DNA from: Bugula neritina
Lineage: Eukaryota > Animalia > Bryozoa
Assembly: GCA_964035545.1 (NCBI GenBank)
Contig: OZ037767.1
Location: 31,140,628 to 31,204,627, forward strand
Reading direction: 5' to 3'
DNA length: 64,000 nucleotides
The translations under genes and the position numbers were made by a program. Of the stretch, positions 770 through 45,040 are shown piece after piece. Positions within the stretch are counted from its first letter, which is position 1; every line of letters begins with the position of its first letter. Under the pieces are notes generated by a model, which saw only the letters and a program-made list of their open reading frames with translations, was not told where the DNA came from and searched no databases.

Positions 770-2188
770 ATGGCGACTAGTCAGGTATCGTTCACTCACC
801 TGGCTGATGTCATACAAAATGATATGGGGTACCAGCTTTGTGTAGAATGCTTTCAAGAGCAGAAGTTACACCAGCTTCCCTGTAACCATCTCCTGTGCTC
901 TGATTGTATTGGTAAGTGATGTCACCATTTTCTGTATTCAGATTGTATATTAGTAAATGATGTCATCATATTTTGTGCTCTGATTGGTGAGTTGATAGCA
1001 GGTCTACTGAAATGCTGATTGCTTTTCTTAGCTCCTCCCTCTACAAGTATGGAGTAGAAAGCTGCTGCTAGCTTTTGCCTGCTGCCAGTTATATAAGTCT
1101 AGTACGCTTTGGAAAATATTCAGATAAATAATTCATATAACTTTTTGCTTACTAATTCTATAAACATTTTGTTTTGCCATATAATAAGTTTTGACAAAGT
1201 TTTCCGCTCCAGATAAACTGTCACTGGACGATGGGTTGTATTGCCCAAAACCTGAATGTAAGAGACTGTGCTCTGGGACAGCCTCCTTGCATCCTAAGGC
1301 TATTGCTGCAATGGCCACCAACCAAACTCTTGGCGATCAAAAAGGTAACGCAACTCCTTTTATCTTATTTTTGTTATAATACAATATATCTTGATATTAT
1401 AGTATTATATATTGTGATACAGTATGCTATATTGTAATATAGTATGAGACATTGCGATATATAGTATGATATGATATTGTGATATGTAATATGATATATT
1501 GTGATGCAGTATTATATTGCGATACAATATATGGTATATTGTAATATAATATGGCATGATGTATTGTGATATTATATGATATATAGTAATATACTATAGT
1601 ATCATATATATACCTATATAACATATAGGTAGAATATATAGTATAATATTATTCTACTTATAAATAATGTCACCACATATTCTGGTTAGATGATGACGAG
1701 GAAGGTTATGCTGATAGCAAAGAGGCTATGTTAGCCTTAGAGAGTGGGTTCAAGGATCTCATTAGACAACATGCTAGGAGAGCTATGAAGATCACGGTGA
1801 GAGATTCTTAGTATGTTGCCATGGTTACTGTGTATGTCATTGGCAGCAGTGTGGGCACACCAACTTTTCTGAAGAGAGTGACAACTCCTGAGCCAAATAT
1901 CTAAATTTTTATCCAAAATAACTTTGACTATATTTCTGTAAATTGCAGGATAAAGCTCAAAGGGAAATTACTTTGCAGCAAACTAATAGATTTCAGGAAC
2001 AGGTGAGTGCAATTCTCGAAAAAATTTGGACTGCCATCAAAGCAGCGGCGAAATGGGTGTGGAACGGAATAAAAGCTGTTGGAAGCTGGATTAAAGGCTT
2101 GTGGGGAAAGTTTTGTGAAGCTGCGAAGCAGGTTGGCAGCGTAGCTAAAGATATCGCCAGTCAGTTTACCTCTTTGACCTTGAAATGA
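770..2188 (+). CDS. RING + amphipathic-helix family, copy 1 (intact, 206 aa)
   Basis: Exons 770-911, 1213-1344, 1690-1796, 1949-2188; all GT-AG, phases 1,1,0, total 621 nt. RING: CVEC-x10-CNHLLCSDC|..CPKPEC. Exon 3 GYADSKEA...HARRAMKIT. Exon 4 EKIWTAIKAAAKWVWNGIKAVGSWIKGLWGKF. Confidence 0.85.
1400..1650. repeat. Degenerate 5-mer AT-rich microsatellite (GATAT/ATATT type) in intron 2 of copy 1
   Basis: Periodic gatat/attgt/aatat units visible directly. Confidence 0.7.
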
Positions 2189-4205
2189 GTTTCCTGCGTG
2201 CAGCTTTCTTCTAATGTATCCGAGTTTTAAATTTAATTTAATTCTTGCGAAACATTTTATGAATGTTCTACTTTATTATAAGTATAAACTGCAAGTCGGT
2301 AGACTGATTACTTGAACAATGTTTAATCATGTGCAATCACGTATATAACTAAGTCATGCCTTTTCTTTAGTAATGACCAAAGCGTCTTCTATTTTGCTCT
2401 ACGTTTCATCTTGCTTTTTGAGCTCTTTTATCAAGTTTGCAGTTGCTTCAACTTTTACTAAAAATATTGTGTTATGTTATTTGAATTCCAGTAAAAGAAA
2501 TGTCATTTGATAAATATTCAAAATAAAGTGTAGGAACGTGTGTTGGTATTCAAGTATAGCACTTAATTGTCCAGTAATGTTGCTTATACACAACTTTACC
2601 AATTTTGTTCTTTCTACTATTTCTATTAGTTTCCTTTCAATGATTTCTTTACTACTAAAATCATTTTAAAACTGTAACACATTATAGCCAAGAGATTTGG
2701 TTGCAGCTATGTTGGCTTTTTGGTAATGTTTAAAGCTACAGGGCAATATTTTAGTAAATGCTCAATAAATGCGTTACAAACTGAATAATTTTTATGTAAT
2801 TTAAAAGGCTATAACTATAACTGCATTATGAGTCATTGCTGCTAATTATAACTGCATTATGAGTCATTGCTGCTAATTATATATGATGTATTGTGGTAAT
2901 ATAAGCAGTGAGTTTATATTGAATGTCTCAATATTCACTTAACCAGCAGATGAAAAACAGTAAACCGCTGATAGGCAGAGTATAGATTGCAATATTCATG
3001 TCAGTTTAGTTTTATAATAATATAGCTCAGCTGAATGCCAGAAAAGAAGTTTTCTTTCCCAGTGCAATAAACCCACACGTTGCTAAATCAACATTGTTGT
3101 ACAATTGTATATACTGTCAAAACTTTATGGCATGTAAACAAAAAGCTCACACATGCCATAAAGCTAAGTGTGCTATTAGACAGTTGATAAACACATATGG
3201 TTGATATGTAAGGCTAAACTTGGTGATCAAAGATTACTTAGAGAAAAGTTTACATAAGGGCTACACCAGGAAAGCCACAATCTGCTTACCTTTGGTGGCG
3301 CTGTCCATGTCTACTAGGCTGCAAGGCCATTTACCATATAAAATGAGTGAGATTAGTTCTTCAAACAATGCATTTTGCTATAAACAAATCCTATATATGT
3401 CCTGCAGGCCTACAAATAAGAGCTAAGAACTTTATAGTACTATAACCTCAGCACTCCTATTGTTGGTATAAAACAGTCTTAGCTACAGCTATTATTAGAA
3501 TGCTCACGTATAGTAAGAAAATAAAAGAAAATGTATACAGCAGGGGTGGTCAATATCCACCCAAAGGGAATTATTACCTGCTGTTCAGGTCTCTAATTTT
3601 CTAAAAAGTTCCACATGCATGTGTATTTTGATGTCCAGTTTTAAAAATATGGTAAATGCTTTGTTTATTTTCTGATATTTAGAAAACCCACTCTGAAAAC
3701 TGGGTCACATTTTTTCAATCTTTAACTTAAAACTTTCAAAAGTAGCAACCTTTAACCAAAAATTATAAATATTATTTTGCAATTCTAGAAGAAAGGAAAG
3801 GTTTTAGCCAATTCTTGTATCACAAAAGTTGTCTTCTCATGAGAGAACAACCTTTCTCTAGATTGAAGCTATAAACTAAAATGTAAAATTCCGCACATGC
3901 AGAGAGTGAGTGAGGGCCAGAAGTTCTCAGCTATCAGCATAAGTATAGTTTGGAATTTGCTTTAAACCACCTGGTACGCTACTTGCACGTCCTTCAACTG
4001 TACACCGAGGTTCAGTAAGTTAAAGTGATCATTGAAAGAGAAATATGCAGCCTGTTTAGGTATATGTGATAGAGAGAGAAAATATGCCAACTACACTTGG
4101 AAACGGACTAAGTAACCACTTATAGGAAAGAATGACGAAACTGTGTGTAGCTAATGAGTGACTGACTTATTTCCTCCTTCTACTTTGACTGCTCCAGCTA
4201 GTACA

Positions 4206-6398
<2,193 letters not shown>

Positions 6399-6756
6399 CT
6401 TTACCCCAGGACAGAAGCCTTTTCAAAGGTTTATGTCCTGATTACCAATCTTTACTTTACACTGATTATACTGGTGTTTGGCTGATATAATTGAAAAAAA
6501 TTCAAAACAGCTTTAAAATGAAAATATTTGATATTTGATTCAGCAGATTTAGCTTTGACATGCTCTAGTTTAAACTGAACTATAATAATAATAACCTTCA
6601 ATTATTTGAATAAACGTTATGATTTTTATCACATAGTTTTTGATCTTCAAAATCCTAAACAGTAATTATAGACAAGATGTGTACTAGCTAACAACTGCAT
6701 GCATTTCATATTTGATTAAATAAACATTTTAACACCTAAATCTATGAACTCCTCTA

Positions 6757-6845
6757 TTCATAACATAACATAACGTAGCATAACGTAACATAACATAACA
6801 TAACGTAACGTAACGTAACATAACATAAGATAACATAACGTATTA
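6757..6845. repeat. (CATAA/CGTAA)n pentanucleotide microsatellite
   Basis: Direct observation. Confidence 0.9.
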
Positions 6846-6894
6846 ACATCTTATGTGCTATAGCCTGCAATTTCAGCCTGTATACCTGCAGGGT

Positions 6895-7040
6895 TTCCTG
6901 TTGCACACTGCCCAAGAGCTTTGTAGGGGAGGGAAGGGGGAGATAGGGGCAAATCTTTGAGTCTAGATAGATTCGAAGGTCCCACAATTACTCTCTCCGA
7001 GAGGTCTTGAGAGTTAACTCAATCAAGATCAAGATCAATG
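6895..7040 (+). mobile_element. 3' end of a non-LTR retroelement with (ATCAAG)n tail; same family as 50320-50700
   Basis: cctgttgcacactg...ggtcccacaa.tactctctccgaga...aatcaagatcaagatcaa is shared with 50575-50700, where it follows RT C-terminal coding sequence. Confidence 0.7.
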
Positions 7041-9149
7041 CTATTCAATTCTTTGACAGACAATATTTTGCATGTTTCTTTACTCAACTAGTCAGTCACA
7101 TTTTGAAAGTTTTAAACAATTTTCGAATTGTCGCTTTTTTCTTATAACTTTATAGAGTTTATTTAAAATATTGTGTGACGCTAAACAAAAAGTTTTAGCT
7201 AATGATAACTCATAGAAAAACCTAAAAATTAAACTCATTGCTTTATTAACTGAATTAGTTGGCATCGTAAGCACAAGCTTTGTGGACAGAATTCATCACA
7301 AAACTCGAAAGGTTCACTTCTTATCTTTTCCAAAAAGTTGGGAAAAGAAACTGCCTATACCTGTGTTGAGCAGGATTTAAAGATTATCATAACGGATCTG
7401 ACTACTTGGAATAAATTTTAACAGCAGAGTTACGGCAAAAGCAACTATCACAAAGTAAGACCTACAAATACAGAACCATGCTTGAGTTGATTCGGTACAA
7501 AGTATAATGCGTTTTCATAATTGTATTTTCTTTTTTAAATTTGCTTACTTTTGTTCATTTTTGGCATGCATAATAATAGTTATTTCAGCTATATATAATA
7601 GTGAGAAAAATTCTAATTGAGCTTTCTTTAAGGTCATATAATCTTTATTTTGGCAGGGTTATCGATGTCTGTAATTGGGACCTTCGAGAAAATAAAAGTT
7701 TGTATAGATCGAGCTATTGGTGAATGAATTAAAAAATAGGAAAACTGACCGAGCGAGCAAGCATATGCAATCAGGTTTAGAGCAGTGTAAAGAGAAAGGC
7801 TTCCTTTGTTCAGCAGTTTGTTCAGATTAGCATTTGCTACTTGTAGCATATCTTTAACATTTTATTTCCTGTTTTGTTTTGATTTTACTTAAATGATTAG
7901 GCTTTTCAAATTTCAATTTACTGAACTACTAAACAAAATGATTGAAAGAATATAATAATTTCTAGTCTTAATGCTGCACCAGTTGTCTATTATAATTATC
8001 TCTTTGTTGTTTCTATCTCTTTCAGAACCTTCAGAAAAATAAAATTTTCATGACGAAAAAATTGGCCCATTATGCCCGGTTTCGGGGTACAGTATATGGG
8101 CCACTGGGTGGGACACAAAAATAATATATTGAAACTTTGCTAATTTGATTGCATCTGATCTTTATATTTATTCAATATACACTCTCTCAGTTCTACAGCA
8201 AAAATCATGTCTTAGCTGTACAGTTTGTGCCACCACAGATAACAAGGGGAGACAAAATCAAACACACATCACTCAAATACATGTATATTCCCTCAATGAT
8301 ATAATGTATATATATGTGTTTTGCATGTGTTTTACAACAAAGCTATATAACCTCACCAGATGTATATTAGGGCAGCTTCTCCTTGTAGTTTGGTAGTCTT
8401 ATAACCATGATGTCTTTGATATTTTACAAAATTTACAAGTCAGTTATGGCTAAATCTACAGATTTTACCAACATTTCAACTAATTTTTGGGCAAACAAAC
8501 TAATAACAGTGAAAGTGGCCAAGTTGAAAACAAATGTGGCTCAAGGAAAATTTATTTCAGAAATTGCTATTATACTAGTTGAGCAATGCAGAGACAAGCA
8601 ATGGCAACAGTATCACCTTTGAGGCTAAAACGCTATAAAGTTTTGATGACATCTTGAAGAATTTTCAAAAGGTAGACATAAAAACAGATTTGGACTTCCC
8701 TCTTCAACATGCATATTATGTTCAACAAGTGCTGAAAATACAATGGCTGAATAATTATGTCATTGCTTTTTTATTATTGAAAAAAACAATCACAATTCTA
8801 AGTCAATTTAAGTTCTCTCACAACTTGACCAACTTTTTTTGCCCCTATATGACTGTTGTGTCATGGTTACCCCTACTGTTACTATATACCTCCCCAAACT
8901 GTTCATTCAGTTTTTGCACTAAATTGCAGCATGAAACGCTGATCATAAGTTAATGCAACCACAACCACAAATCCATCCATATGAGCATCAATTCAGATAT
9001 AAGGAAAGCTTAGTGTATTAGTAAAGTAAAGTTGGCTATAACTTGCAACAATTACTGCATATATTATACACATTTATATTTTAAGTTTCAAACTGAAGTT
9101 TGCATATATATTGGCTTATTGCTTTCCAATTACCGTCTATGTAAACGAA

Positions 9150-9760
9150 AAATTCATTACATAATGCAGTTTACAAAAAACAACTACCCACCATGTGTAG
9201 TGCTTTCATGTGTTTGTAGAGTAAAAATATTACATAGTTGAAAGCAGAGCACTGTCTTTTTGATTCAATATTGCACAAGAAGAAAATTTTGACTGGATCT
9301 GACAGTATGCATAATATAACACATATTAATTATTGTTATGATATAATATAATAATAATACTTTATGCAATGCAACTCGTATATAAAAGCTATAGTTTAAG
9401 TTACACTGTGACTACAATATGAATATGAATAGAACTAATACTTAGGCTTACGCTAAACATAAAAATGTCAATACCATTTTTTCTATGAAGTCGGGAACTG
9501 AAAAAGGTGGACTGTAACCATTCAAGACAAAGAATAGGAAAATGTCTGCATGTTTACATACAGGAAAGTAAATAACATATTATTTCCACACCTCAGCTGC
9601 AAGCATGAAAAACTTTCAAAACTTTCTTTTTGTGCAATATTGAATCAAAAAGACAGTGCTCTGCTTTTATCTCTATAATATTTTTACTCTACATACACAC
9701 ATGAAAGCACTACATGGCATGGGTAGTTTCTTTTTGTAAACTCCATTATGTAATGAATTT
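9150..9760. repeat. Inverted repeat (~140-bp arms at 9150-9292 and ~9616-9760), MITE/foldback-like
   Basis: aaagcagagcactgtctttttgattcaatattgcacaa is the reverse complement of ttgtgcaatattgaatcaaaaagacagtgctctgcttt; similarity extends to aattcattac/taatgaatt. Confidence 0.85.
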
Positions 9761-10009
9761 CTTAAAATGAAACTGTTTTGGAATTTGATTGCACAGATTT
9801 GTTCCTGGATGACTTTTGTAATTTGAACTTATCTATGTTTTCATTAAGGCTCTTCACAGTTACTGTGTTTCTCTTACGATTTAATTGTTTATATTCTGGT
9901 GGAATTCGTGTAACATCCAAAAAATTAATGGAAAATAACTTTTTAGTCATCTAGGGTGAAGTTTGGCATATAAAAGCATGTTAAGTACCAACTGGTCCTG
10001 TCAGTAGTT

Positions 10010-12025
10010 ATTATTTTAAGAATTTGCGTAGATCCAAGACTTCATATTTTGAATCTTTTTTTGAAAATACTTCAGATTCTAGTAAATGTTGGAAAGTCAT
10101 AAACGAACATCTAGGAAAAAATCGATCAAAGGGATTAAATGCTCCTAAAACTTTAACATCTGAAAATATTACACTAACTGAAGATAAGGGCATAGCAAAC
10201 AGTTTTAATAAATACTTTACTTCCATAGGAACAACGTTATCAAAGAAATTCACTGACGACAATTTTGATTTTACAGCTCAGAAGTCAGATAAAAAACTTG
10301 ATGAACAGTTTAGCTTTACAAATATTGAAAGCACAGTCATTGAAAGCTTACTTAAAGATGTAAACCCAGCCAAAGCTGCAGGATTAGATTTAGCTCCCAC
10401 CAACCTAATAAAAATATCTGCATCTCATCTTTCAAAGCCTTTAGCTTACATTATAAACACAATTATCAATGATGGCGCTTTTCCAAATGAACTAAAAAAA
10501 GCTAAAGTTGTTCCTCTACACAAAAAAGGCATAGCTACTGATGTAAGTAATTACCGCCCAATCTCTATATTACCTGCTTTCAGTAAGATAGCTGAAAAGA
10601 TTTTAAATAAGCAAATAGTAGATTTTCTAGAAAGCAAAAATTATTTAACTGATAAGCAGTACGGCTTTAGACGAAATAGAAACACAAATATTGCCTTAAT
10701 TAATCTAACAAATAAGGTTTTAAATGCCATGAACAATGGTAATTCTGTAGCCGGAATTTTCCTCGATTTTAGTAAGGCCTTTGACACAATAAATCATGAA
10801 ATCTTATTAGCTAAATTAAAATTGCTCCACTTTTCAAGTCACAGTGTGAAGCTAATTAAAAATTATCTGTCCAATCGACAACAGTCTACTATTATTAACA
10901 ACACATATTCTGACTTTATTCATATCACATGTGGAGTACCACAAGGATCCATACTTGGTCCCACACTATTCCTAATTTATATAAATGATCTTCCAGATGT
11001 AACTATGCATTTAGACCCTATATTATTTGCCGACGATACGAACCTCTTCTTTGAATCAAAAAATCTATTAAACAATATGGACATCATAAACTGTGAATTA
11101 AAGAAAATTGAAACTTGGTGCAATAAAAATAAATTAACTGTAAACATGAGTAAAACAAACTATATGATAATCAAAACAGCGCAAAATAAACAAGATTTAA
11201 ATGGCTTTGCCTTAGAAATGTTCAACAAAAAATTAGTGGAGGTAAAATTAACTACCTTCCTAGGTATTATAATAGATTCACATCTTTCTTGGCTACAACA
11301 TTGCAGTAAGCTTTGTCAAAACCTAAGGCCCTTAGTAGGCTTGATAAGTAAATGTTCCCATCACCTACCTAGAAAAATTCTAATACAAATATATAACTCT
11401 TTTGTAAATTCTAAGATAACATATTGCCTAGAATCGTGGGGTAATGCAGCAAACATTTATCTTGAACCATTACATTTACTACAAAAAAAAATACTGAGAA
11501 TTATCTATAAAAAGCATCACCTTTCCCCATCTAAACCACTGTTTCTTAGTTCTTCAATCATGCCTATTCACACTCTACACAAATTCAAACTAATACTGCT
11601 CTCACATAAACTTTACTATTCTCAACTAACACATCTCACACATAACTATCCCACAAGATTTTCAGAGTTCAGCCTACAAACTCCTCCATCATCAACTGCT
11701 GCAGGTCAACGAAGAGTGGAATTCCAATGTTCGTCGCTATGGAATAAATTGCCTAGTTCTATTCGTGCTGTGGGGAGGGAGGCTGGTTTCAAACTTGCCC
11801 TGAGAGACCACCTAATGGCAAATTTCCAGATAAAAAAATAAAACTCTTTGAGTTGCTAAAACTTCCAAAAACCTAAACAAAAATCTTATATAACTGTCAA
11901 CCATTCATGGCTCGGCGCCTCGACTAGCTACAGTGCTATTGCGCCATAGGCCCTGTCATTTTGTTTATTTTTTCTCAATTAATTTTTTTCTCCAACTACG
12001 ACAAAATAAAACAAACAAACAAACA
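10010..12025 (+). mobile_element. 5'-truncated LINE of the CR1/L2 group (Crack-like) with open reverse transcriptase ORF 10024-11841
   Basis: RT motifs NYRPISIL, QYGFR, FLDFSKAFDTINH, GVPQGSILGPTLFLIYINDL, FADDT. No endonuclease N-terminus. 3' stem-loop at 11909-11952, then AATAAA and an (AAAC)n tail at ~12004-12025. Confidence 0.92.
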
Positions 12026-12329
12026 ATATTATCAGTTGGCATATATAGAGCTATAAATAGGAAAGTGGAAGGCAGGCCAATGATGTAACAGCTAGGAGCT
12101 TTCTTTCGAAAACTAATATGGACTTGCAAAAGATGCTGAGCTATAAGGTACATGTCTTAACTTGGTTGACTTCAATTTTAAGTAACCAGGCACATTTGAG
12201 CTAATTATACAAGTTTATGCTGACAAATTATTTTCAGATTGATTCACAACTGTTCTATTATGTACCATTACTAGTTGTTAGTATGATACACATGCACACA
12301 CTCACACACACAAACACACACATATATAT

Positions 12330-12486
12330 AGTAGTAGTAGTAGTAGTAGTAGTAGCAGTAGTAGTAGTAGTAGTAGCAGTAGTAGTAGTAGTAGTAGCAG
12401 TAGTAGTAGTAGTAGTAATAGTAGTAATAGTAGTAGTAGTATTAATAGTAGTAGTAGTAATAGTAGTAGTAGTAGTAGTAGTAGTA
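12330..12486. repeat. (GTA)n microsatellite
   Basis: Direct observation. Confidence 0.95.
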
Positions 12487-13916
12487 CGCACGCACTTTAC
12501 ATGCATGATCACATATTAGGATCTCAATAACCCCCACATAGTAATAAGTTTCACAAAATCACAACAATGGTACACGCTATAATGCATGGGATAATAATAG
12601 TGTTTGCCGAGAATAATATTGCGGATTTTAGTACTTCACGAGGAGAAAAGTTTGACACAGCATGTTTGACAGGCTATAGGCAGCTAGGATGTGATTTTTC
12701 TTATATTGCAATCTGAGTAGCATACATTATAGTATCGTAAATCAACCATTACTGCTGTTAGTTTTAATAAACTAGTTTGAAATGAGAAATCTGCCAGTCT
12801 AAAATAAAAGTAACAGTTTGCATGTATGTATGTAAGATTTTACTCACTATTTATCTCAGAAGAGATATATCACAGCAATGTTGAAAAATCACATAATTAC
12901 AAAGAAAATGGTTTTTTTACGGAATAAGAAGGGGAGACAATAAAACTTCACGTTGCTAGATGAAAAAGTTAATGTGCTGGAGGGGCTATCAGCTTTATAT
13001 GGTGAAGAATTAAAGAGTTTTCTTTGTCGGTTTGGAATGGAACTCTTATGATGTTCAGAGCTACTCAGTATTGGCTTGCTGGATGCTTTACCTTTTAATG
13101 TTTTAAATGAAGATCAAAACTCTTATTAACCTATAGCTAAAGTGTTTATCCAAGTTGAAAAGTAGAGTACTTTATTTCCAGCAAAATTATAGCACAATAA
13201 TTTTAGTTTGTTAACATGTGGCATTTGATTTTTACTTTGTGTGTTTACAAATATAAGCAGATTATTACTGTTATATATTTCATGCATTACTTTTTATGTC
13301 TTTACTGATGGCAGCATTTTTACTGCTGCCTTTTAGTGAAAAAATTGCTTTGAAAAACTACCGTTATAAAAATATAACCTGATTTTAATAATCTTACAAG
13401 CAGCTTAGTGTAAAACATTATACAGAGCCTAGTAGATTAGATTTACGGCATCTATTTATTAGCTATTGTAAGACTAAAGTTAGCTTGCAAATAGAAGCAC
13501 TTTATCAGAATAATTATTATCAACATATCAAACTCGCTCAACTGCATGAAGAGTGGTAGAGATCAATAAATAAATAAAATTGAATGCAACTTACACAGCA
13601 TCTTTTATACATGTTTATATTATTAAGCTTCTAATGGTAGTTGTTGTCACATATATTGGTCTGCCTTCCATTTACCTGTTTATGGCTCTATGGATGCCAA
13701 ATGACAACCCTATGTAAAAAATAGCTACTGCCAGAAACTGCAGCAGCAGTACTTGTCATAGGTGCTACATGTCAGACTTTACTTTACGACTTTGACTTTA
13801 TATAGCCCAAAAAATTTTCTCCAAGAAAAGTACATTAATTATGGAAAGATACAGCAATAATACGCCCTTAGAAATTTGGAGTTGTCTATGTAACAAGGTG
13901 GTGTACTTATTATTGA

Positions 13917-14150
13917 TGTTTCCCCTAATCAGAGAGCACAACTTCTATAGGCTATAACTGTTTGCCCATTATTATAAAATACTATAAATAAAGATGCATT
14001 CAAAAAAGATAATATTATTATATAATAATTTAATAAACCAGATATTTTGTGCGCGTGCGTGGAGAGTTGATGCTGTTGTTTCAAACCCAGCAGATATAAA
14101 AATAGCGGCATTAGCCATCACTTCTTTTCTTGTTAAACCTACATTTTTAG

Positions 14151-14230
<80 letters not shown>

Positions 14231-16142: not shown

Positions 16143-20605
<4,463 letters not shown>

Positions 20606-24806: not shown

Positions 24807-24935
24807 CACACAATAAAAGCTGTTCTTTAATTGTTTATGTGGTTGTATTATATATAGGCCTATTGAAGTTTAGACAGCAGATAATTTAATGGATGTTCCT
24901 CTATAGTATATAGTAAATGCAGTGTTTATATCTCA

Positions 24936-25140
24936 TCAGGTATGTGAGGGGTCTTCAACTATAACTCTCTCCTTTCTAAACAGCCCACTGACCCACTTAA
25001 AGAAACTGATAAGTCGCCGTCCAATATTTCTGAAAGTCGCTGCAAGTGATTCCCAAATTTTTTGAAAAACACACTTAATTTCTTTCCAAAATGTTTTACT
25101 TTCAGCTCTTGCTTCTTCTCGTTCCTGCGGATTCTGAATA

Positions 25141-25227
<87 letters not shown>

Positions 25228-25267
25228 CATATATATATATACATATATATATATACATATATATATG

Positions 25268-25359
<92 letters not shown>

Positions 25360-26182
25360 GCGTATTGCATGGCAGAATAGATAATATTTAATCTAACTCC
25401 AACCTATTCTCACCTCCATATTGTTTACTCCCTCCATGTGGAGATTAAAGCAGCGCTGAATAAAAGTCCAGACATTAAGAGTGCCACGCCTCGCCTCTGC
25501 TTCAGACTGGTACTGTGGTGGTACACCAGTGTGAAGAAACTCTGGCTCACTTGGTGGATCACTTGTTTCAGTTGACCCATTCTCAGTTACAGATTCATTG
25601 TCATTAGCAACAGCAGCTTCAACTAGCAAAACATTCCATTGTAAACCTAATGATATCATAAAAACCAGTTTTAAGAGAAACAAATTAAATATAACATTCC
25701 TGCTGATATATTTAGTATATTCTAGACCTATACATACAACAGACAGCTACATCTCAGGTTGTTATAAAATTATGCACCTACCAGAGAAATCTGCATCCAG
25801 TCTTTCATATGCAGCTCGGTTGGCAGCTAAAATCTCATCAGCTAGAGGAAACTCATCAGCACTTTCTGCAGGGCACTCTTTTCGACATTGTGAGCAGAAC
25901 AATACCTCTCCACTTGATCGAGCAAATTGTATTCTATTACCTTTATATAGATAGATCATAGGATATTCTATTACCTTGATAAACAAACAGAAATATATTT
26001 TATAACTTTTATCTTATTTATAACTTATATAGTAGTAAGCTAAACAACTTACCGATACAGCTATGGCACTCTGCATGACCACATGGTAATCTTCGCAGGG
26101 TCTGTTCATTCACGAGACAAATCGGACAAACTGTTATGTTTTCTTGGAGAAAAATTTCTTCAGAAAAAGATCTTTCTGCCAT
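24936..26182 (-). CDS. RING + amphipathic-helix family, copy 4 (intact, 231 aa)
   Basis: Exons 26182-26053, 25940-25782, 25622-25414, 25133-24936; GT-AG, phases 1,1,0, total 696 nt. CPIC...[15 protein letters not shown]|G...[18 protein letters not shown]; exon 3 QYQSEAEA...HMEGVNNME; exon 4 [38 protein letters not shown]. Confidence 0.9.
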
Positions 26183-27397: not shown

Positions 27398-28199
27398 TTA
27401 TGCTTGAACTGCTTCTGCAGCTGCCAGAGATTTTTTGCTAGTAAAAACACTAGCTATCCATTGGCCAAATATGCAAAGTATATATATTTTTAACTGATTT
27501 TAATATTCCATCAAGGAAACGCATCAATCTGTCAAAAACTCCCAACACTTCTTTTTTTAACAATTTTACTTTCTTCCAGAGCTTCCTTGCATTCTTCTTG
27601 GTCCTACAACAATACTATTTTGTTTATTTATTTTATTTTAAAGGTACCTATATATAGTTAAAATATTTGCCCTTTCATTCAACTGTAATTAGATGATTTT
27701 AGAATGGTTTAAGGTGCTTTAAAGGTTACAACCGATTTCACACATTTTAACAAAAATATCTTCTAAAGTAGCATAATGTAAGAAGAACCCTTAAATCTAT
27801 TTGAACTATAAGATGGTTAATTTTCCATTTTTGATATATACATGCATATAGTATAGCAAAAAATATCAGCCTTTTCAAATTTTATTGCCTATAAGCCACT
27901 ACTTATACACTTTTCAATTTCCTTTGTGCCTGCATCAGTTGCGCTTTTATAGACCCAGAGTTAGCATTGCATGATATATTTTTTCTAAGCATTTAGATGA
28001 AAGATGCATACCTCTATTCCTTCAGCTGCTTCATCGTGGAAACAAAACCACTTCAGAACAGATTTTCTCATTTTTTCTAAGCCTTTTGTTGCCTCTTCCT
28101 TGTTCTTGTATTTTCTAGGTCTACCAGATATAAGCAAATTTGGTCCAGCTTCTAAATCGGGTGATTGGTAACTCTCATCAAAGCCAGAGTCATTTTCAC
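27398..28199 (-). pseudogene. RING + amphipathic-helix family, copy 5 (pseudogene)
   Basis: Exon 3 28199-28012 is open (KYKNKEEATKGL...HDEAAEGIE|gtatg). Exon 4 27603-27398 needs two frameshifts to read DQEECKEALEE/..KKEVLGVFDRLMRFLDGILKSV/..LCIFGQWIASVF. Possible decayed exon 2 near 29590-29692 (YTECQSSH after an in-frame stop). Confidence 0.75.
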
Positions 28200-28478: not shown

Positions 28479-28642
<164 letters not shown>

Positions 28643-31500: not shown

Positions 31501-31635
31501 TATACACAGTGCATTACAGTATGCAACATGCAGTATACTGCAGCTATAACATATGCTATATTTCACTACAATTATAGGCCACTACATACATACGTACACT
31601 ACACTGCGGCAGGCAGGCTGATTGTAGAAAGTATT

Positions 31636-34371
31636 TTAAACAGTTAATTGTGCAACAGGCTGCTCTTTACTCCTTCCAAAAAATTCAGCTACTCTTTTAC
31701 AGAAATTTGCAAGCATTTTTCCAAAAGCCGAGTTTTTGATGTTTTCCAGTAGCTCCTTAAACTTTCTTTTAATTTTTCCCCGCCAATTTTCACATTCATC
31801 TTCTGCTTTCCTTCGTTCTTCTGGATTCTGGATGAATAAAATGAGCTTGTTTTAAAATGAATGTCATAAATTAGTAAAACAAAGTATTTTACATCCTATA
31901 AGCTAACAAAAACTTTCATAGAACGATGTGTTGTGAAAAGGTTGCGTCTAAAAGGTTTTGATTAAACATTTCCTGTAAAGGTTACAAAAATTTTTGATAA
32001 ATGTTAGAAATCAACATTTTAGCAGAAAATTAAACAAATGTTAAGAAAAATTGTTCTATAAATGTATGTTATAATGTTTTATAAATGTTTGGCCCAACTG
32101 CTGTAATAAAACTGCAGCCATTAGATTTAGCGGTATACATAATATAACGTAAGTATTTTTGTTATGCTTGCATAGTGAAGCTAACAATGCATGCGTCTTT
32201 CTTTTTATGAACATTCACTGATTTGCAAAAATTTGTAAATATTATTTCATATGCTAATAATTATATAATGACATTCTTGATTGTCAGAAAAGTTAGCAGA
32301 TGGAGTTCCTAAAATAATTCATTATAAGTTCAAAATGGCAAGGAATTAAAAGTTTACTTTGTGGATTTTAATGTAAATTTTTATAATTGATAATTCCTGC
32401 TCAAAATTGGCATGCAGAATGCTTGCAGTGAAAGCAAGCAAAATTTGTAGTGTTCCCAAACGTCACCTTAAAAATTGTCAGTGCGACATCAGTTATAAGT
32501 CATAAAATATAAAACTACATCCAGTATAATAATACAGACAATATCCCACAATAACTGCTGCAAAACTATAGCATGTCGGCTACAGCTTTATACTTTTTAT
32601 TTCGACATCAACTTATATCAAAAGAACAGATGATTCTTATATTACATTTCAATTTTCTGGAATGTTTCTTTATATTTTCTTGGAGAAACTAAACTTTTTT
32701 TGAAAAGAATGCTTATTGTTTAATCTTAATAACTGCAAAATTATGACACCATTAGTTTTTATGGCCTAACAGCTAACGCATGCAAGCATTTTGGAAACAC
32801 ACACACACACACACGAGCACACACGCACACACATCTGTGCGTGTGTTTGTATGCGTGTGTGTGTAGACATGTGTGTAGATGTGTGTATGTGTGTATGTGT
32901 ATATGAGTATATGTGTATATATGTGTATATGAGTATATGTGCATATATGTGCATAATTTACAAGTTATTAACTTTAGTCATGCATGTTGTCAAAGCAGGT
33001 ATTTTCTAAAAGTGGGAAACATTTGATGCTATAAAACGGATGACTGCTAAGAATTTTAACGTTTACCAAAAAGTAAATATATAAAAAACTCAATTCTACT
33101 AGCATACATTATACATAGAAATATAATATGTAATACCTTGATTTTTTGAACACCTTTTTCGTGACACCCAAAAAGACATCCAAGGAAGTACCAAATATTA
33201 TTCAAACCTCGCTCTGCATCTTCAGCAGATTCATAAACTGGTGCTTCTCCAGTAAGAAGAAAGTTTGGTTCAGCTGACAAACCATAGTTGAATGACGGAC
33301 CAGAATTTTGTTGATTTATTTGGTCAAGTCCTGAACTAGCACTACCTGGAGTTTTTAAAGACAGGTTGTCTTATTGTGATACATATGTTCATATACAACA
33401 TTGGCTACTTTTAATGTTTGAGTCACTACAGACACATCAAATTCTAATGAAACTATATTTTATGTCTTAAAAATGTTAAAACCCGTAAAATTTACAAGTT
33501 ACTATATAAGAAAAACAGTTATTTTTAAGTTTGAAGCTGCCATTGTTTGGAAATTGTACAGCAATCGATTCAGATTTGCACTTGGCCATGCAGGATCTTC
33601 ATTATTTATAATAATAAAACATGTCATATGTTTCTTTTATTTTTTGTTGTTGATGACTTTCTACTATAAAACTATTTTGTTGCTTGCTTCACATTTTGAT
33701 GGCAGTCACCTATGCATACTTAAGATTACAGATAACATGTTATACAGTAGATGTAGTGCATATTATTGTAGTTGCTGCTGTAATTATTATAATAAGTAAC
33801 TTAGAAAATAAACATGCAACACATGTATGCACAAAATTTAATTTAAATTCAACATTCTTGGGCATATAATGCCCTATAGTTGTATTTAGCTTACATATAG
33901 TCAAGATACATATATAAATCATCTAATAATAGTATATAACATCGCAAAGATTTTTATAGTGTTTCTTACATAAAATTGTATACTGTAGATTTTAACTATT
34001 TAGACTTACTTAAGTGCGTACTGAAGAAATATTTTAAAGTTGTCAAACTATATATAACTATACAAAATATACCTCCAATTTCATTTTTTTAATTGAGACA
34101 AACCCAGCTAATTATAAAAAATTACCATTTCAACTTCAACATGTAGATAAATTATATTAGTGTGATGTTGATGGCAGGAGTAGACAATCCTTTAAGCTGT
34201 AAAAATTTTGACTTTGAAAATGGTTAAGAGTTGTCTTACAACTCGAATCTTTTGAGGCAGCTCTATTTATTGCATTTACAGACTTTGCTTCTGGAAAGTC
34301 TTCAATACTCTTAGCTAAGTGACACTCTTGGCAGCTGCCACATGTGACATGTTCAGGAGGTTGTAAAGCAG
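31636..34371 (-). pseudogene. RING + amphipathic-helix family, copy 6 (exons 2-4 open; exon-2 acceptor mutated; exon 1 not confidently found)
   Basis: Exon 2 34371-34240 (VTCGSCQECHLAKSIEDFPEAKSVNAINRAAS) is preceded by ttttaaa where copy 3 has ttttaag. Exon 3 33345-33137 (VYESAEDA...HEKGVQKIK). Exon 4 31827-31636 (NPEERRKA...WRGKIKRKFKELL...LANFCKRVAEFF). Confidence 0.78.
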
Positions 34372-35387
34372 TTTAAAAAAATACTTTAGTAAATAATATT
34401 TTCATCATGAATCTGTGGCAAAATTGTATAAAAAGCTTAACAAATTGCCTGTAAGTTAGGTCATGCCTTTGCCAACAGGCTTGTAACTCTGATATGGTTT
34501 ATAGCAACTGGCTGCAGCTTCATTTTTAATAGAGGATATATAATATGCAGAACCTCACCGATTTTAAAATGCACTGATAATTTTATTTATAGCGATCAAA
34601 TACATCAATCTATGATCAGTTAGATTTACTATATAACAAATACAAATAAGTAGCTATATTACGTAATTAATAAGTCTATAAGTCATCATATATTTATGAC
34701 TCATAGTTTTTCAAGGAATAAAAACAAAGTTAGGGTTTGAAGCATCCAATTTTTTGTGGAATTGCATATAGAAACACTTGATAAAAATATTCCTTGTGCT
34801 GCTTTCTAATTTATCTTCTGCTGCTGTTGCATTCAGTCTGAATTTTACACCAGGTCAAGCCGACTCATTATTTACCATCTAACACAATTTGGCATCAATT
34901 TAAATCTAAATAGTACATGAATGTGAATAAACATATTATATTTAGGCGGTCAACAAGCCTGAAACTGAGATGTACTATGATACGTGTAGGCTAGCTATGA
35001 ATTAATGCAGTGCATGTGAATTCAGTACACCTGGGCATTTCACACATCCTTTCCAAATTATACATAGCATGTGCACAGAAGCTCCTGAGTTTCCACACTT
35101 TGTTAAAAGACCTAAAAGTATCTCTGCATAAAGCAGACAACTCCAATGAATTTAAAGATTTCGTGTAAATAAACCAGCAGGGTGACTGTGAGAGCGTAAT
35201 ATATCTAACACTCCATAGCATTATATAAATACCTATTAGTTTTTATTACGCTGCAGTGAGATATAATTGGTTGGTTGTAGTTTTTATATGAGTTAGCTAT
35301 CTCTGATGATATGTTACTAGTTGTTATACAAATACTTGCCGACCAGTCAAGCGGAATGACTACATGGGCATCAGTTCTACTTAAACC

Positions 35388-37796
<2,409 letters not shown>

Positions 37797-39082
37797 TTAG
37801 TCTAAAAAATAATTAGTCTACCTTTGTGTAAAATAAGAATTATTCTACATTTTTATAACTCGCAAGTCTGCATTGCCCCTTGCTAGTATAGCAGTATATT
37901 TGTTTTACTATTGGCGAGTTTACACTTGCTGCATAAGCATATGTGTGGTAGTTTACTAGATCCTTAAGACTATGTGACTATATGTTGTATAGTTACTAGT
38001 ATATATCCTCTTGTTATCTCAGATGTAAGCACACCATTATATGAGTTAACACCATTGTAAATATATTATAGTGAGTATTCTTTTAATGGCAACAATCAAT
38101 AAACTTACTTGCTATTTAATTGTCTTTCATTTCTTATGCCATTGAGCTTTATTGTCAGCCCCAATTGTATTCTCTAATTATTCCTCTCATTATAATCATA
38201 AACAAGTTGCTGCAATAGAAATAAACAAGTCAGCTGATTCTGCTACTGCTAGTTGATTAGCAATAACTGTACAAGTTCAGTTTAGACTATCTGCTTCTAC
38301 TTTAAGCTCTTTGTAATATCTAAAATTTAAATATATCTCCATGCTTTACATTATGCTGATGAATTTTTCATTCAACGCATGCAAACATATTATAGTGATT
38401 GACTAAAATCTGCAATGCACAAGTTGAATAAAATTATCGTAAGACAATGGCAGGAAATTTTGCCATAATTTAAATTTTATTGTATATAAACTGCTTATAC
38501 TATCAAATCTGAGAAGTTAACTGCATACCTTTTATTGGTCTTAAAATTATATTATAAAACAGAAAACGTAATACCAACTGTGCAATTTAAATACTAATGC
38601 TACATTAAAAACACAACTATATATGCGTAGAATTTTAAGAAAAAGTTAGAAAATTAAAAAGAAAGTTTGGTTGTTTATAAAGCTCATACAAATGTGAATT
38701 GCATAGCAAGATGTGACGGATCAAATTAACTGTTGAACAATCTGCAGTTATATCCAATTGATCAGACTATGCAGTACTGGTTTTATTTACAGCCAGAATC
38801 TATGACTATCTGTTGACACACTAGATGATGCTGTGAATAATAAGTAGAGTCGCCAGAGCGGAATGTTATCTTACACTAAATAATGTTATATATATAGTTT
38901 AAAGTATTAGATTAGAGACTGCAAACAGTAAATAAATAAATGAGTACACAATGCTCATGCTAGAGATGATATAAGAAATGACTCATCAGATTAAGTATTT
39001 CTGTTTGGTTGAGTAAATATTGATGAAAGAGGGAATGGCATTAACAGGCTAATAGCATGTGGCCTAGTTTAAAATGTTTCAT

Positions 39083-40253
39083 TTAGTAGTACACTAAAAA
39101 GAGAAAAGGAATGACATAGACTACACATGAAGCAACTATGTTCCTCCGAGCAGAGTTACAATCATCAGAAACTGTATCTCCATCAGCACATGTATTTGTG
39201 TCGTCTTTAGAGTCATCTTCACCTGTTGTGCTATTGCTTGGCTTTGCGGTACTGATTGGCTCAGCTGTACTGATTGGACAATTCTTGTAGCAAACTGCTT
39301 TGCAGTATGCTCCAAGAAATCCTATAATAACAACCATAAATTATAATCTAAATCTATGGCTAGAAAAATATTCTGTAATTGTGCAATGCAACAAGTTTTT
39401 CAAAATGAGAGACCAAATGGCTGTTGATTCCAAAAGGTTAATTGAAATTTTCTCTTCACTAGAGCTTTACTTTGCTTCTTTTGCATCCCTTACTTGCTTT
39501 CATATATTTTATTATATTTTTTCTATGATGCATTTTCTGGTGTATAGAGCTATAAAACATAAAATGCCATTTGAAAATTTGTATGAACTGTAAGCTAGAA
39601 TTGGATTCAAGTGTGGATATAATATGCTTCATAGTTGAGGGTGACACTTCACTTACGTTGGATCGAGCTGAAAAAATATCTGTCTATTTAGTTATCTGTA
39701 CCAGACTTTCAACAAAAGAACCCAACTTATGAAATTATATAATAAAACAACGTATCTTTTATATACGGTAAGCATGTTGCAGTGATACTATATACTGGAA
39801 GCATACCTAGACAAAGCTGTTCCCCCTTTTGGTTAGTTTCAAATGACACTTTACTACCATTTAGTAGTACCCCGCAGGATTTGTACAGCTTAAAACCTTC
39901 AACAAAGTAACATCCAGGTTCTTTTGGCCCATTATCTTCACAGAAAGCGTCTGTATAACTAGCTACCTCTCCGGTACACTCATATATTCTACAACACAGT
40001 GCATTAGTCATGACTCTTTATATAACTAAATATTTTCTCTTATACCATATCAAGTATTTCACTGCAGTACAGAAACTTCAAATTAATAAATATTGCTCAT
40101 AAACAAATCATTATAACCATACTCTTCAATCTGTGGAAGGCTGGCAGTTGGCGTTGGTGTAGGTGTAGTAGAGTTATCTTCCCCATTAGCTAACCCTTGG
40201 AATACTAAGAGTAAAAGGGCTGAAGTAACCAAGAGATGTAACTTCAATGTCAT
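39083..40253 (-). CDS. Secreted-pathway Cys-rich protein, predicted GPI-anchored (183 aa)
   Basis: Exons 40253-40123, 39988-39807, 39321-39083; GT-AG, phases 2,1, total 552 nt. Signal peptide MTLKLHLLVTSALLLLVFQGLANG, T/P stretch, 8-Cys domain ending CKAVCYKNCP, S/T/D-rich linker, then CNSARR and a hydrophobic C-terminus IVASCVVYVIPFLFLVYY with no cytoplasmic tail. Confidence 0.8.
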
Positions 40254-40737
40254 TGTTGTTTCTATGGACACTGTAAATAATACAATAGTAAAGTTAGACA
40301 ACAAGCAATATAATATATAATATTAGGAATATATGTTTATTCAAGTTGATAAAAATAATATTTTTAGTAATCTTTACAAAGCCATTGGCATTGTGCTCAA
40401 ATAAAAGTAGCTTCCACAGAACATATATAATTTGCACTGCCTTAGTATTCAAAATCTCACACAGTTACTAGTGCAGCTTCATTCCTTGCTGCTGCTAAGT
40501 TTTAAGATTTCTAGCACAATATAGCTATGATGACATATCTCAGTAAATTGATTTTTACCCATTGATTTTAATTGTTTATATAGTCTATTGAGTATTGATT
40601 CATTTTTTCATTGTAATAACACAATTGTAATCAGTGTTAAACAACTCTTGATTCAACCTAATCCAAAGTAAATGCAATCTGTATAAAAAGATTTGATAGC
40701 TAAGAGAACACAAATAGTCTTGCATGGTACTAAACAC

Positions 40738-41309
40738 TTGTTGATAGTAAAAAGTAAATAAATAGTTTTTTAACAGGTTGCAATATTTTCGCTTTCTAGC
40801 AAGTGTCTAATGACATTATTTGAAAAGATTTTATTATTAAAAAAATGAGTTTGTAAAGTTGAAAAATGCTGATTCACTGCTGTGATGATTTGGGATTTAC
40901 CGGAATAACCCATCTATTTCCTCATGGATTTATACTTTCAATATCAACCATGTATTTCAAGATTTATAAAATGGTGATTTATAGAACATATAATTTTGTA
41001 AAAGTAACTAGTCTATAAACATTTATTGTATAAATTTTTATAAATGTTAATGTTCTATAAATCACCATTTTATAAATCTTGAAATACATGGTTGATATTG
41101 AAAGTATAAATCCATGAGGAAATAGATGGGTTATTCCAGTAAATCCCAAATCATCACAGCAGTGAATCAGCATTTTTCAACTTTACAAACTCATTAATTT
41201 TGTTTAATAATAAAAGCTTTTCAAATAATGTCATTAGACACTTGCTAAACCGAAAAAAATATTGCAACCTGTTAAAAGACTATTTATTCCCGTTTTACTA
41301 TATCAACAA
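40738..41309. repeat. Long palindrome/foldback (~250-bp arms, ~60-bp spacer)
   Basis: 40738-40989 is the reverse complement of 41050-41309; the inner ~140 bp are almost perfectly matched. Confidence 0.95.
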
Positions 41310-41449
41310 AAATGTAGGCAGACATCATACTCTACTTAGAGGGGTAGCAAAGAGAGAGATACAATAAAATATTAATAGCATAAACCTTTTCTTTTTACCC
41401 GATCGTAAAATTACAGTATGCATCGCGGCTTTCCAACTCTTCTAGGCAT

Positions 41450-41532
41450 CAATAATAGCAGTATAATAGCAGTATAATAGCAGTATAATAGCAGTATAAT
41501 AGCAGTATATTAGCAGTATATTAGCAGTATAA
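41450..41532. repeat. 11-bp tandem repeat (AGCAGTATAAT)n
   Basis: Direct observation. Confidence 0.9.
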
Positions 41533-43289
41533 TTAGGACAAAATTGAAACGCTTTAATTTTTTCTTAAACCTTTTCAACTATAAAAGACATTCTCTTTAA
41601 GCTATGAATATGATTATAGGGGGCTACCCCTCTCTACCTCTACTACTTCTTAATAAGAGAATCCAATAGAAATGTAGAACTTAATGCTATTTTTCATAGC
41701 TGTTGGTAATTCTAATCAAAGAAAAGAAACATTATAAATATATGTTTATTTCATCAACAGTTATTTATTGAAAATATAGCTCTAGAAAAAGTGCATTCCT
41801 ACATGTTGCATGGTACAACTGCGAATGCTCTGTTTTAATGGTCACGAGTTGGAGGTAGCGAGCTCCAATGAGTGTTTCACAGCATTATTAGTTTGAAGAG
41901 GCAGTTTTAAAAAATAGAATATAAATAAAACCACAAATCCTAAAAAAACTTCAATATATTCATATATATTACATGAACCCATACTGTTAACATGACTTCA
42001 ACACCTCAAAGCTCAAGTCGTTGACTAAACTTCCCTCCCCCCATGTATTGGCCCCAAACCACGAACTTGATAAAGTTTCTATCATGTTCAAGGTTACAAT
42101 GTATTGAAATAGCGCTTTCAAGTTGTTATTCTACTTACCTCGCTTTCTGCTAGTATAGACTTTAGTACTGTTTTCTGCTAGTATAAACTTTAGTGGCTGA
42201 GCACCAGTTGGCTTGCGCTACTTTTTCCTGCTAAAGCAGTGCCAACAATGAATTGGGGGGTTCAAACAATGATGTAACGGAGTTAACAAAAGAAGCATTG
42301 AATGGTTAGCTGATAAGGAAGCTTAGCTAAAAACAAGTCAAATATTATAAAGCTATTCGTCATACCCTTTTAGTGTGCCCAAGCCTGATTATAGTTTATA
42401 TCTATATATTATTATAGTGTACATATCTACAGCATATAATATCATTATAGTGTATATCTATATATTATTATAGTGTTTATTTATATATTACTATAGTGTA
42501 TATCTATATATTATCATTATTATTTAAAAAGATTTTTATTTACTGAACTCACTTAGTGTGGAGATAAGAGAGTGATAAGGACATGATATGGTAAGATAAA
42601 TTTATATACTGGGGATGAGGAGGGGGTGAGGGGTAAGGATGGGGTAAAGGGGGTAAGGAGGGATAGGAAGAGATGAGGGGGTCCTGGAGAAAAAAGAATT
42701 TTCTACAAGCAGTAGTATGAAATCATTACCCACGTCTCAACTGTTAGATATTAAATATTCATAAATTTAGCAAAAGCAGATAATTTAATTTGATCAGATA
42801 TGACTCACCTGTTTGGCGCACATTTATAATTTTCTAGAACTTTTACAAAAGTGAAATAGACTTTTCAGGCAGTTTGCTGCAAATTGTTGTTTAAAGTCAC
42901 ACATTAAGTTATAAGTGGCTACAGATTTAAGATATAACTGCTGTGATGAACTTGAGTAACATAGCTTTGTGCTTACATTATCATATATAAACTTGGGTAT
43001 CGCATTACCACAGAAAACCAGCTTAGGATACGAGTTTTTTACTTGGAGTATAAGCAGTTTTCATCTCAAGCTGCAACAATTTGATTGTAATAAAAGCGTA
43101 ACCAGATTTTTTGTGACCTAATTTTTGAGGTAGGGTGGGTTTGAACTTGTCCCAGAATAATTTATTATAACAAACTGCTGCCCTGACGACTATAAACCCA
43201 ATACTGTTTTGTTATATTTCTAGTGATAACCTGCTGGGTGTTTCTCCGGAACCAACTGTTGTCCACAATTCAACTAGCATCTGGCAATG

Positions 43290-43685
43290 AGCTATAACTA
43301 GCAACTATAAACTAAGGACTAGCAATTGGTAACTAGCAACTAGGAACTAGCAATTAGAAACTAGCAACTAGGAACTAGCAATTAGAAACTAGCAATTAGA
43401 AACTAGAAACTGGCAACTAGCAAATACTCTGAGAGGCTATACAAGCCAGTTAATTTCAAATAAAGTTTTAGTGACAGACTTAATTTGCATAATTGAAGTA
43501 AATATTTCAGTCTATAAACAACAAGCTGGAACTGTTACAGAGAAATACCTATCAATAACGAGAAATACTGATCAATAAGGAGAAATACAGATTTATAAGG
43601 AGAAATACAAATCAATAAAGAGAAATACTGATCAATAAAGAGAAATACAGATCAATAAAGATAAATACTGATCAATAAACAGAAA
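43290..43685. repeat. Two minisatellites: AACTAGC-based (43290-43405) and 20-bp AGAAATACTGATCAATAAGG-type (43540-43685)
   Basis: Direct observation. Confidence 0.85.
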
Positions 43686-44079
43686 CATTGACTCATTAAC
43701 TGTAAAGCCCAGCACAGAGCTGACATACATGTAATATATCATATCAGTTAATAAAGTCATATATTCTATAAACTTGTCAAGTCATATAGTTGATCTGGTC
43801 TGAAATACAGGGAAACTTATTTCTCCATTCTGTGCAGGCCATTATTATTTCAGGAAAAATCCTTTGTCGGCAACAAATATTATGTATAAAGTCTCTACAT
43901 GCTTATAATTGAAGGTTAATTATATAATAAAGTATAAGACAAAAATGTATGATATGGTTTGTTGTATAGAATGCCAGGGTAATTTTCATTGTCGTTGGAC
44001 TGCAAACTATACTGTAGTATTTAGCACTAACATAACTGTTAGGGTTTATATAATACACACAGACAATACACCACATCCC

Positions 44080-45040
44080 ATTTTATCCTCCATATTGTTT
44101 ACTTTCTCCATGTGAAGGTTAAAGCCATGTCTAGGTATCATTCTTAACTTGTCTTTGTTTTGCCTCCTCTGAAGTTTAGAGCTGTGGAAGTGACCAATCA
44201 TATGCTTTGGCTGACTTTTCCTCAGCAATAAGAGCATATCTTAGCTTTAGTTATTAAAAATAGTTACTATAATTTATTGTAATTCAAGAAAGCTACCTCA
44301 AACAGAAACAACGAAACATAATAAAGTGTCCCCCAGGTGTGCTTATTATATACTAAGCATACAGCAAAACAGCTACATCTCAGGTTTTTATAAAGTTACA
44401 CCTGTTGTATCTGGATTTATAAGTATTATAAGTATGTGTAGTTGTCATCTTTTATTGTTGCATGTGTGTGGGGTGCACAACTCTAAGTTTGACATTATTA
44501 TTGCATATAGCGTGGGTGTGGCTTGTGTGAGTGTTGTAGCTATATAACCTAGTGCAAATGGGAGAATTGAGAGACTTTAGACTGATTGAAGAACGATTGA
44601 GGATATTTGTATGTAATGTATGCGACCCAATTAGAATGTGTTAGAGTACATCAGTGAGTGCTAGCCTAGGACCATAGACTGAGGAGCACCACCAGCCAAC
44701 TACTCTAACCCGGAGTCTCGACTTCACCCCTAACGGACGGACAGAAGCTGGAGTTACCTTGTAGCCAAGCCATTAACCCGCAACTGCACACCAACCCTGA
44801 GCTCACCCCAAGGCTACAATATATATATATATATATTACTTGGTGAGTTTGAGATACTCAAAATCAGTAAAACCCACCGGAACACACCTACCAGAGATAT
44901 CTATACCCACTCTTGCATATGCAGCTTCGCTGGCAGCTAATACTTCGTCAGCTATAGGAAACGCATCAGCACTTTCTGCAGGGCATTCTCTCCGACAAAT
45001 TGTGAGCAGAAAAATATCTCTCCACTTGGTCGAGCAATTG
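44080..45040 (-). pseudogene. RING + amphipathic-helix family, copy 8 (pseudogene closest to copy 4)
   Basis: 45040-44892 reads [34 protein letters not shown] with a 2-nt insertion (copy 4: [34 protein letters not shown]). 44130-44085 reads FNLHMEKVNNME with the donor lost. Intron motif cagctacatctcaggtt is shared with 25745. Confidence 0.82.
44403..44884. mobile_element. Solo LTR (482 bp) inserted in intron 2 of copy 8
   Basis: Termini TGTT...AACA, flanked by a CACC duplication (44399-44402 and 44885-44888). The homologous intron of copy 4 (25765-25782) is the empty site. Confidence 0.8.

Follow-up and report, generated by a model that had tools for sequence, protein, structure and literature searches.

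Membrane-anchored RING ligases such as RNF5/RNF185, RNF144, MARCH and MUL1 have a cytosolic RING which is placed at the membrane by transmembrane helices or large domains, and the first RING of the RING-between-RING (RBR) ligases often ends with C-x4-C. A cytosolic RING at a membrane is also found in RNF213, which is droplet-associated (PMC13314531). The TRIM/RBCC proteins are defined by one or two B-boxes following the RING (PMC3503706), and the helices flanking TRIM RINGs form a four-helix bundle that dimerises the RINGs and is needed for activity (PMC11992055). Here we describe a family of RING genes from the bryozoan Bugula neritina, eight loci of which (G1 to G8) lie in a 64-kb window, that is, the whole stretch of DNA analysed (G000:C3:31140628-31204627, contig OZ037767.1; GC 28-40%). 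Like the TRIM/RBCC proteins (RINGs of the TRIM2/3 and TRIM56 type) and four genes of the same genome (L015, L018, L022 and L023), the family has an N-terminal C3HC4 RING with flanking helices. It differs from them in having no B-box, no recognisable TRIM coiled coil and no C-terminal SPRY, NHL or filamin part, and in carrying an amphipathic tail and degenerate residues at the contact with the ubiquitin-conjugating enzyme (E2). The family is predicted to share the membrane-placed cytosolic RING of the membrane-anchored ligases and RNF213, but by means of a surface-lying helix that is transmembrane-like in G7 only, and no sequence link to the membrane-anchored ligases was found. Four copies close the RING with C-x4-C as RBR ligases do, but neither IBR nor RING2 is present, as no further Cys/His cluster follows the RING and Pfam gives no match. 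Finally, perilipins, apolipoproteins, the C-terminus of IL-32, PEX11, cathelicidin and phage tape-measure repeats likewise have a long helix whose hydrophobic face is bulky and whose flanks are basic, but none of them has a RING and the likeness is compositional, without significant homology. Judged from these comparisons, the proteins would work most like membrane-targeted RING ligases, as apparent kin of the TRIM proteins that fall outside the TRIM definition for want of a B-box. The combination of a RING with a lipid-binding-type helical tail looks undescribed.

We propose, with a probability of roughly 0.5, that the family consists of lineage-restricted small cytosolic proteins which act as lipid-surface-targeted RING ligases or pseudoligases and show host-conflict-like turnover. 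Exons 1 and 2 encode the C3HC4 RING, the flanking helices of which would dimerise it by analogy with TRIM RINGs, and exon 3 encodes a charged spacer helix. Exon 4, judged from its hydrophobic moment and a structure model, forms an amphipathic helix of 50-90 residues rich in Trp/Phe and Lys, most likely lying on a lipid surface (an organelle, a lipid droplet or the membrane around a microbe). Crowding on that surface could replace the TRIM coiled coil and gather the RINGs, which would then ubiquitylate neighbouring membrane proteins or their own protein; copies with degenerate E2-contact residues would be weak ligases or heterodimer partners.

The eight loci were found on both strands where an earlier note, made from the sequence alone, had placed them (Table 1). 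G1, G3 and G4 are intact four-exon genes, as had been read from the sequence, with GT-AG introns in phases 1, 1 and 0, and their spliced frames are open over 206, 221 and 239 amino acids. The count of three intact genes in that note stands, but its five damaged ones are in fact four broken loci (G2, G5, G6 and G8) and one intact derived gene (G7). Nor is the four-exon plan common to all eight loci: the full set is found in only four of them, exon 1 is missing in the window from G5, G6 and G8, exon 2 also from G5, and G7 has three exons. G1 is expressed and spliced. RNA-derived contigs from four runs of two studies skip exactly 301, 345 and 152 bases, so that all three predicted junctions were recovered to the base. 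The RNA type of the runs is an inferred label, and two RNA runs go under the label symbiont metagenome; the contigs are nevertheless taken as spliced G1 RNA because the intron skips are precise. The final 41 bases of G1 exon 1 and the donor are tandemly repeated into intron 1 (window 881-986, + strand), in a copy number that differs between the contigs L042 and L043, and the first donor is the one used in RNA.

The common exon plan reflects homology and not chance. When exon profiles were scored in a leave-one-out manner against 500 shuffles, the scores of exons 1, 2 and 4 each exceeded all or all but one of the shuffles, with G7 exon 4 being marginal. Exon 3 was weaker, passing in most copies and failing in L016 and L025. 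An artefact or chance resemblance is ruled out by the RNA junctions, these scores and the purifying selection described below.

The RING identity proposed earlier was borne out by eight zinc ligands in C3HC4 order and spacing across exons 1 and 2 of G1, G3, G4 and eight other copies. The ligand set is incomplete in G2, where one ligand is missing, and in G7, where the first exon has four Cys and no His, and the RING is lost to a degenerate zinc finger. Exon 1 alone, being half a domain, matches zf-C3HC4 and zf-RING_2 just short of the cut-offs (E 1e-4 to 7e-3). The sequence places helices on both sides of the RING. No signal peptide was seen in the family proteins (approximately 180-240 amino acids).

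The phase-1 intron that follows the sixth zinc ligand recurs in at least ten further RING genes of the genome, a clustered and expanded TRIM-like group that includes L015, L017-L020, L022, L023, L026, L027 and L031. Exon 2 of these genes agrees with that of the family in its last Cys pair, aromatic-Pro motif and helix and likewise ends in phase 1. In the four genes that could be read far enough (L015, L018, L022 and L023) exon 3 is a B-box, with weak zf-B_box matches in Pfam. Both the TRIM-like N-terminus and the absence of B-box, SPRY, NHL and IBR after the RING, as stated in the earlier note, were upheld, the latter by Pfam profile searches, which found no B-box in exons 2-4 of the family. 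Common ancestry of exons 1 and 2 with the TRIM-like genes is well supported. A swap of the C-terminal half probably gave rise to the family from TRIM-like stock, because the RING intron and the exon 2 motif are shared but exon 3 of the sisters is a B-box; a B-box would have been lost rather than never present. In a RING tree built from 93 columns, with the two exons aligned as separate blocks and set side by side, the TRIM-like genes form a supported clade (95/92) and the family is unresolved at the base. This tree was rejected as a placement of the family, being too short.

The amphipathic character that had been noted in the C-terminal exon is significant in five copies of the window. In G1-G4 and G6 the 18-residue hydrophobic moment of exon 4 is 0.60-0.81 (shuffle P 0.001-0.035), with 4-15 Trp/Phe and a net charge of +4 to +9, whereas two TRIM coiled coils taken as controls reached 0.46-0.48, which is not significant. 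High moment, bulky apolar face and basic flanks, the marks of a lipid-binding helix, occur together in these five copies. The 19-residue hydropathy is at most 1.3 in the RING-bearing copies. The last exon of the RING-less G7 has transmembrane-like and tail-anchor-like segments with hydropathy peaks of 2.1 and 2.5. AlphaFold models exon 4 of G2 as two long helices with no compact fold (predicted template modelling score 0.36) and that of G7 likewise as long helices without one. Bulky hydrophobic residues promote the binding of helices to droplets as well as to bilayers (PMC5889406), so that they do not single out a target membrane.

The tail could instead be a protein-protein helical bundle, either a replacement coiled coil or a substrate adaptor, in which case the proteins would be soluble mini-TRIM-like ligases with no membrane role. 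Exon 3, a charged helix with few aromatics, would suit such a bundle, and the weak matches of exon 4 include helical bundles and tape-measure proteins, with one look-alike classed as a coiled coil in Pfam 38. The many Trp/Phe residues and the positive net charge are, however, unlike the TRIM coiled coils tested, there is no profile match to the one TRIM coiled coil of the same genome that was compared (hhalign probability 0.4), and the tail of G7 is transmembrane-like. We regard the soluble bundle as rather unlikely.

The lipid-surface reading is supported because G1 is spliced, G1 and G4 are constrained, the zinc ligands are intact, exon 4 is amphipathic and the G7 tail is transmembrane-like. 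Several results weigh on the other side. In the alignment the basic linchpin (K/R) is kept in three of 12 RINGs, compared with six of seven among the TRIM-like sisters, and the loop-1 Ile/Val in five of 12, compared with seven of seven; loop-1 Ile and Arg linchpin occur together in G4 only. With the basic linchpin in so few RINGs ligase activity is therefore uncertain. Two copies outside the window have an exon 4 moment of 0.52-0.54, which is not significant (P 0.10 and 0.22), and amphipathic helices can equally form protein bundles. The RING tree places the family neither as one clade nor inside the TRIM-like group. The clear amino-acid excess is confined to one exon of one copy, G5, which is broken in this genome.

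The same alignment bears on a reading of the family as mostly pseudoligases, the RINGs of which would heterodimerise with the TRIM-like sister ligases and so tune or relocate them. Degenerate linchpin and loop-1 residues next to conserved zinc ligands and flanking helices would be expected of such proteins, TRIM49/TRIM51 provide a precedent (PMC11992055), and G7 keeps its frame without a RING. Yet G4 retains the Ile and Arg, the RING of G1 has Pro and Lys at E2-contact positions, and some TRIMs are active with other residues at the linchpin (PMC11992055). We regard this account as quite unlikely.

No named family with a RING and an amphipathic tail was found in searches of Pfam, protein, PDB and Foldseek data in which the spliced models were taken exon by exon, in line with what the earlier note had stated. 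Against 1.84 billion proteins the exon 2 profile gave five matches and the exon 4 profile three, all of them exon-sized fragments of the same genes on JGI metagenome contigs; relatives outside this species complex were not found in these searches. The restriction to the species complex is provisional, because other bryozoans may be poorly covered. Searches of exons 2-4 in Pfam, PDB sequences, Foldseek and the Atlas yielded only sub-threshold or compositional likenesses, and Foldseek of exon 4 against the PDB gave no match. Word-index searches, which see only limited lengths, returned one self-like fragment for the G4 exon 4 frame and nothing for the L013 exon 1 frame. A metagenome scan with exon 2, from which near relatives may have been absent, had no match, and a literature search found no paper on the family. 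Most of the sequences that exon 4 weakly resembles (tape-measure proteins, IL-32, PEX11, cathelicidin) are long amphipathic helices, and several of them bind membranes. Kinship with IL-32 was not supported: the Atlas score of 0.76 is a lead only and exon 4 has no match to PF15225 in Pfam; a genome search with PF15225 found no match, and its positive control likewise had none. A tape-measure or viral origin was rejected, the likenesses being compositional and the genes spliced host genes.

According to another reading the effector part of the protein is its tail, a cationic helix of the antimicrobial-peptide type, which would disturb microbial or organelle membranes and be kept at a low level or switched by the RING of the same protein. 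Cationic amphipathic helices, presence/absence turnover and weak matches to cathelicidin CAP18 (E 0.03), a scorpion antimicrobial peptide family and PEX11 speak for it. All these matches are, however, sub-threshold and compositional, the tails of two copies are neutral, exon 4 of G4 hardly varies (pN, the proportion of non-synonymous sites that differ, 0.007) and no signal peptide for export is present. We consider an effector tail improbable.

Bugula neritina is a species complex whose sibling members differ by 8-11% in COI (PMC4183541), and the second lineage, compared through JGI and Logan contigs, shows 86-89% non-coding identity, which fits the divergence in that complex. The family undergoes birth-and-death turnover, as had been supposed, on a purifying background, and its content differs between the lineages in intact, cut and extra copies. 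Orthologues of G1 are intact in L042, L043 and L049, that of G4 in L044, and exons 3 and 4 of G7 are open and of equal length in L053-L055. Exon 2 of G2 is intact in L043 and exon 4 of G5 in the second lineage. In L050, G2 breaks off where exon 3 ends, and G3 exon 4 stands without an upstream exon 3; L046 and L050 also contain copies with best matches in this genome of 57% and 49% (few candidates scored), and L053 has one further exon 2. The dN/dS comparison that the earlier note had called for indicated purifying selection in most orthologue pairs: pN/pS (pS being the synonymous counterpart of pN) is 0.31 for G1 and G4 together (34.5/1035 vs 31.5/288 sites, Fisher P 8e-7), 0.29 for exons 1-2 of G2 and 0.20 for L025. 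G7 exon 4 and L013 evolve at about the neutral or intron rate, with G7 keeping frame and length, and positive selection on L013 was rejected (ratio approximately 1.8, P 0.21). An excess was found in the exon 3 helix of G5, a region picked after inspection, where 29/104 non-synonymous and 2/28 synonymous sites differ (P 0.02); for the whole exon 3 the amino-acid excess has P 0.06. Gene conversion was rejected as its source, as either version resembles the sampled paralogues at 43-52%, an unsampled donor being possible.

The genes could also be real and their turnover no more than neutral churn in repeat-rich surroundings, without a conflict role. This would agree with the LINE and other repeats between the copies and with the intron-like rate of L013 and G7 exon 4, but it is highly improbable given that the G5 exon 3 helix exceeds the adjacent intron (11/169, P 2e-6), has 9/16/6 differences at codon positions 1/2/3 and shows no conversion from sampled paralogues. 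Gains, losses and the local amino-acid excess point, less firmly, to a host-conflict role, and an immune role would rest on the turnover and this one exon. The likely host is home to a defensive bacterial symbiont, and to our knowledge almost nothing is known of bryozoan intracellular immunity. It is conceivable, though doubtful, that the family represents an undescribed class of invertebrate cell-autonomous defence, in which TRIM-derived mini-ligases would sense a lipid surface (the vacuole that encloses a symbiont or pathogen, a damaged organelle or a droplet) through the variable amphipathic tail, be activated by crowding and have paralogues tuned to different membranes.

The family probably offers a clean natural example of exon replacement, in which a TRIM-like RING was fitted with a new C-terminal half. 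One cluster offers a graded series from a full RING with an amphipathic tail through degenerate RINGs to a RING-less copy with a transmembrane-like tail. Their size allows the proteins to be reconstituted with E2 and liposomes, which makes it possible to ask directly whether RING dimers can be activated by a lipid surface in place of the coiled coil. Should the tails be plain protein bundles, the family would be one more lineage-specific RING expansion.

The tandem cluster of about eight genes reported earlier accounts for the window only, as it continues with additional copies 5 kb to the left and further clusters exist. Searches of the 216.0-Mb, 321-contig assembly with exon profiles, in which copies outside the window are known from 3-kb loci and match coordinates, found four more copies at C3:22.08-22.10 Mb and two at C6:7.69 Mb, along with exon-1-only candidates on C298 and at C3:18.5 Mb. 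Altogether the family numbers approximately 15 firm loci, or up to 19 if all possible ones are counted, spread over 3-5 genomic places. One of the copies, L016, has the complete four-exon plan with phases 1, 1 and 0, and the exon 4 profile recovered two copies outside its training set in the correct place and on the correct strand. At C3:18.5 Mb an element with a reverse transcriptase and a GIY-YIG-like part directly follows exon 1 of the family-like gene (L014:1823-3122, - strand).

Table 1. Family loci and other features of the window (window positions; exons in order of transcription).
Feature	Position	Strand	Structure and remarks
G1	770..2188	+	Intact, 206 amino acids; exons 770-911, 1213-1344, 1690-1796, 1949-2188; junctions in RNA contigs
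G2	4206..6398	+	Exons 4206-4344, 5504-5626, 5863-5975, 6102-6398; in-frame TGA at codon 86 in exon 2; seventh zinc ligand Cys to Ser; longest amphipathic exon 4 (98 amino acids)
G3	16143..20605	-	Intact, 221 amino acids; exons 20605-20512, 18801-18646, 17097-16898, 16358-16143
G4	24936..26182	-	Intact, 239 amino acids; exons 26182-26053, 25940-25782, 25646-25414, 25133-24936; alternative acceptor of exon 3 24 bases downstream
G5	27398..28199	-	Exons 3 (28199-28012) and 4 (27603-27398) only; two frameshifting indels in exon 4
G6	31636..34372	-	G3 paralogue; no exon 1; exon 2 ~34372-34240 without AG acceptor, exon 3 33345-33137, exon 4 31827-31636
G7	35388..37796	+	Intact three-exon variant, 180 amino acids; exons 35388-35502, 36721-36836, 37485-37796; no stop, canonical splice sites, no exon 2
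G8	44088..45045	-	Relic, G4 paralogue; frameshifted exon 2 ~45045-44892, decayed exon 3 ~44240-44088
Reverse transcriptase	9985-11838	+	LINE-type (long interspersed nuclear element) frame of 618 amino acids between G2 and G3 (RVT_1, E 3e-35)
Cytochrome P450 fragment	14035-14154	-	Isolated I-helix (p450, E 8e-4), adjoins TG repeat
LINE-like fragments	near 17459-18050 and 36100
Three-exon gene	40260-39086	-	Signal-peptide-like start, Thr/Pro linker, Cys-rich body, hydrophobic C-terminus resembling a glycosylphosphatidylinositol anchor signal
Inverted repeat	40738-41309		Self-complementary, 570 bp, 89% identity; likely foldback or miniature inverted-repeat transposable element
Membrane protein exons	48750-46900	-	Probable single-pass; Cys-rich piece, transmembrane segment, then Cys cluster

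On the minus strand G6, with exons 2, 3 and 4, is directly followed by G5, with exons 3 and 4 only (window 34372-27398), and the G5 exons could be alternative terminal exons of G6. In L044 a second partial copy of G4 exon 2 stands just before exon 4 (L044:3677-3823), as a duplication or an assembly artefact. The three-exon gene within the cluster has no real Pfam match; it is open and conserved in L053, with a pN/pS of approximately 0.5-0.6.

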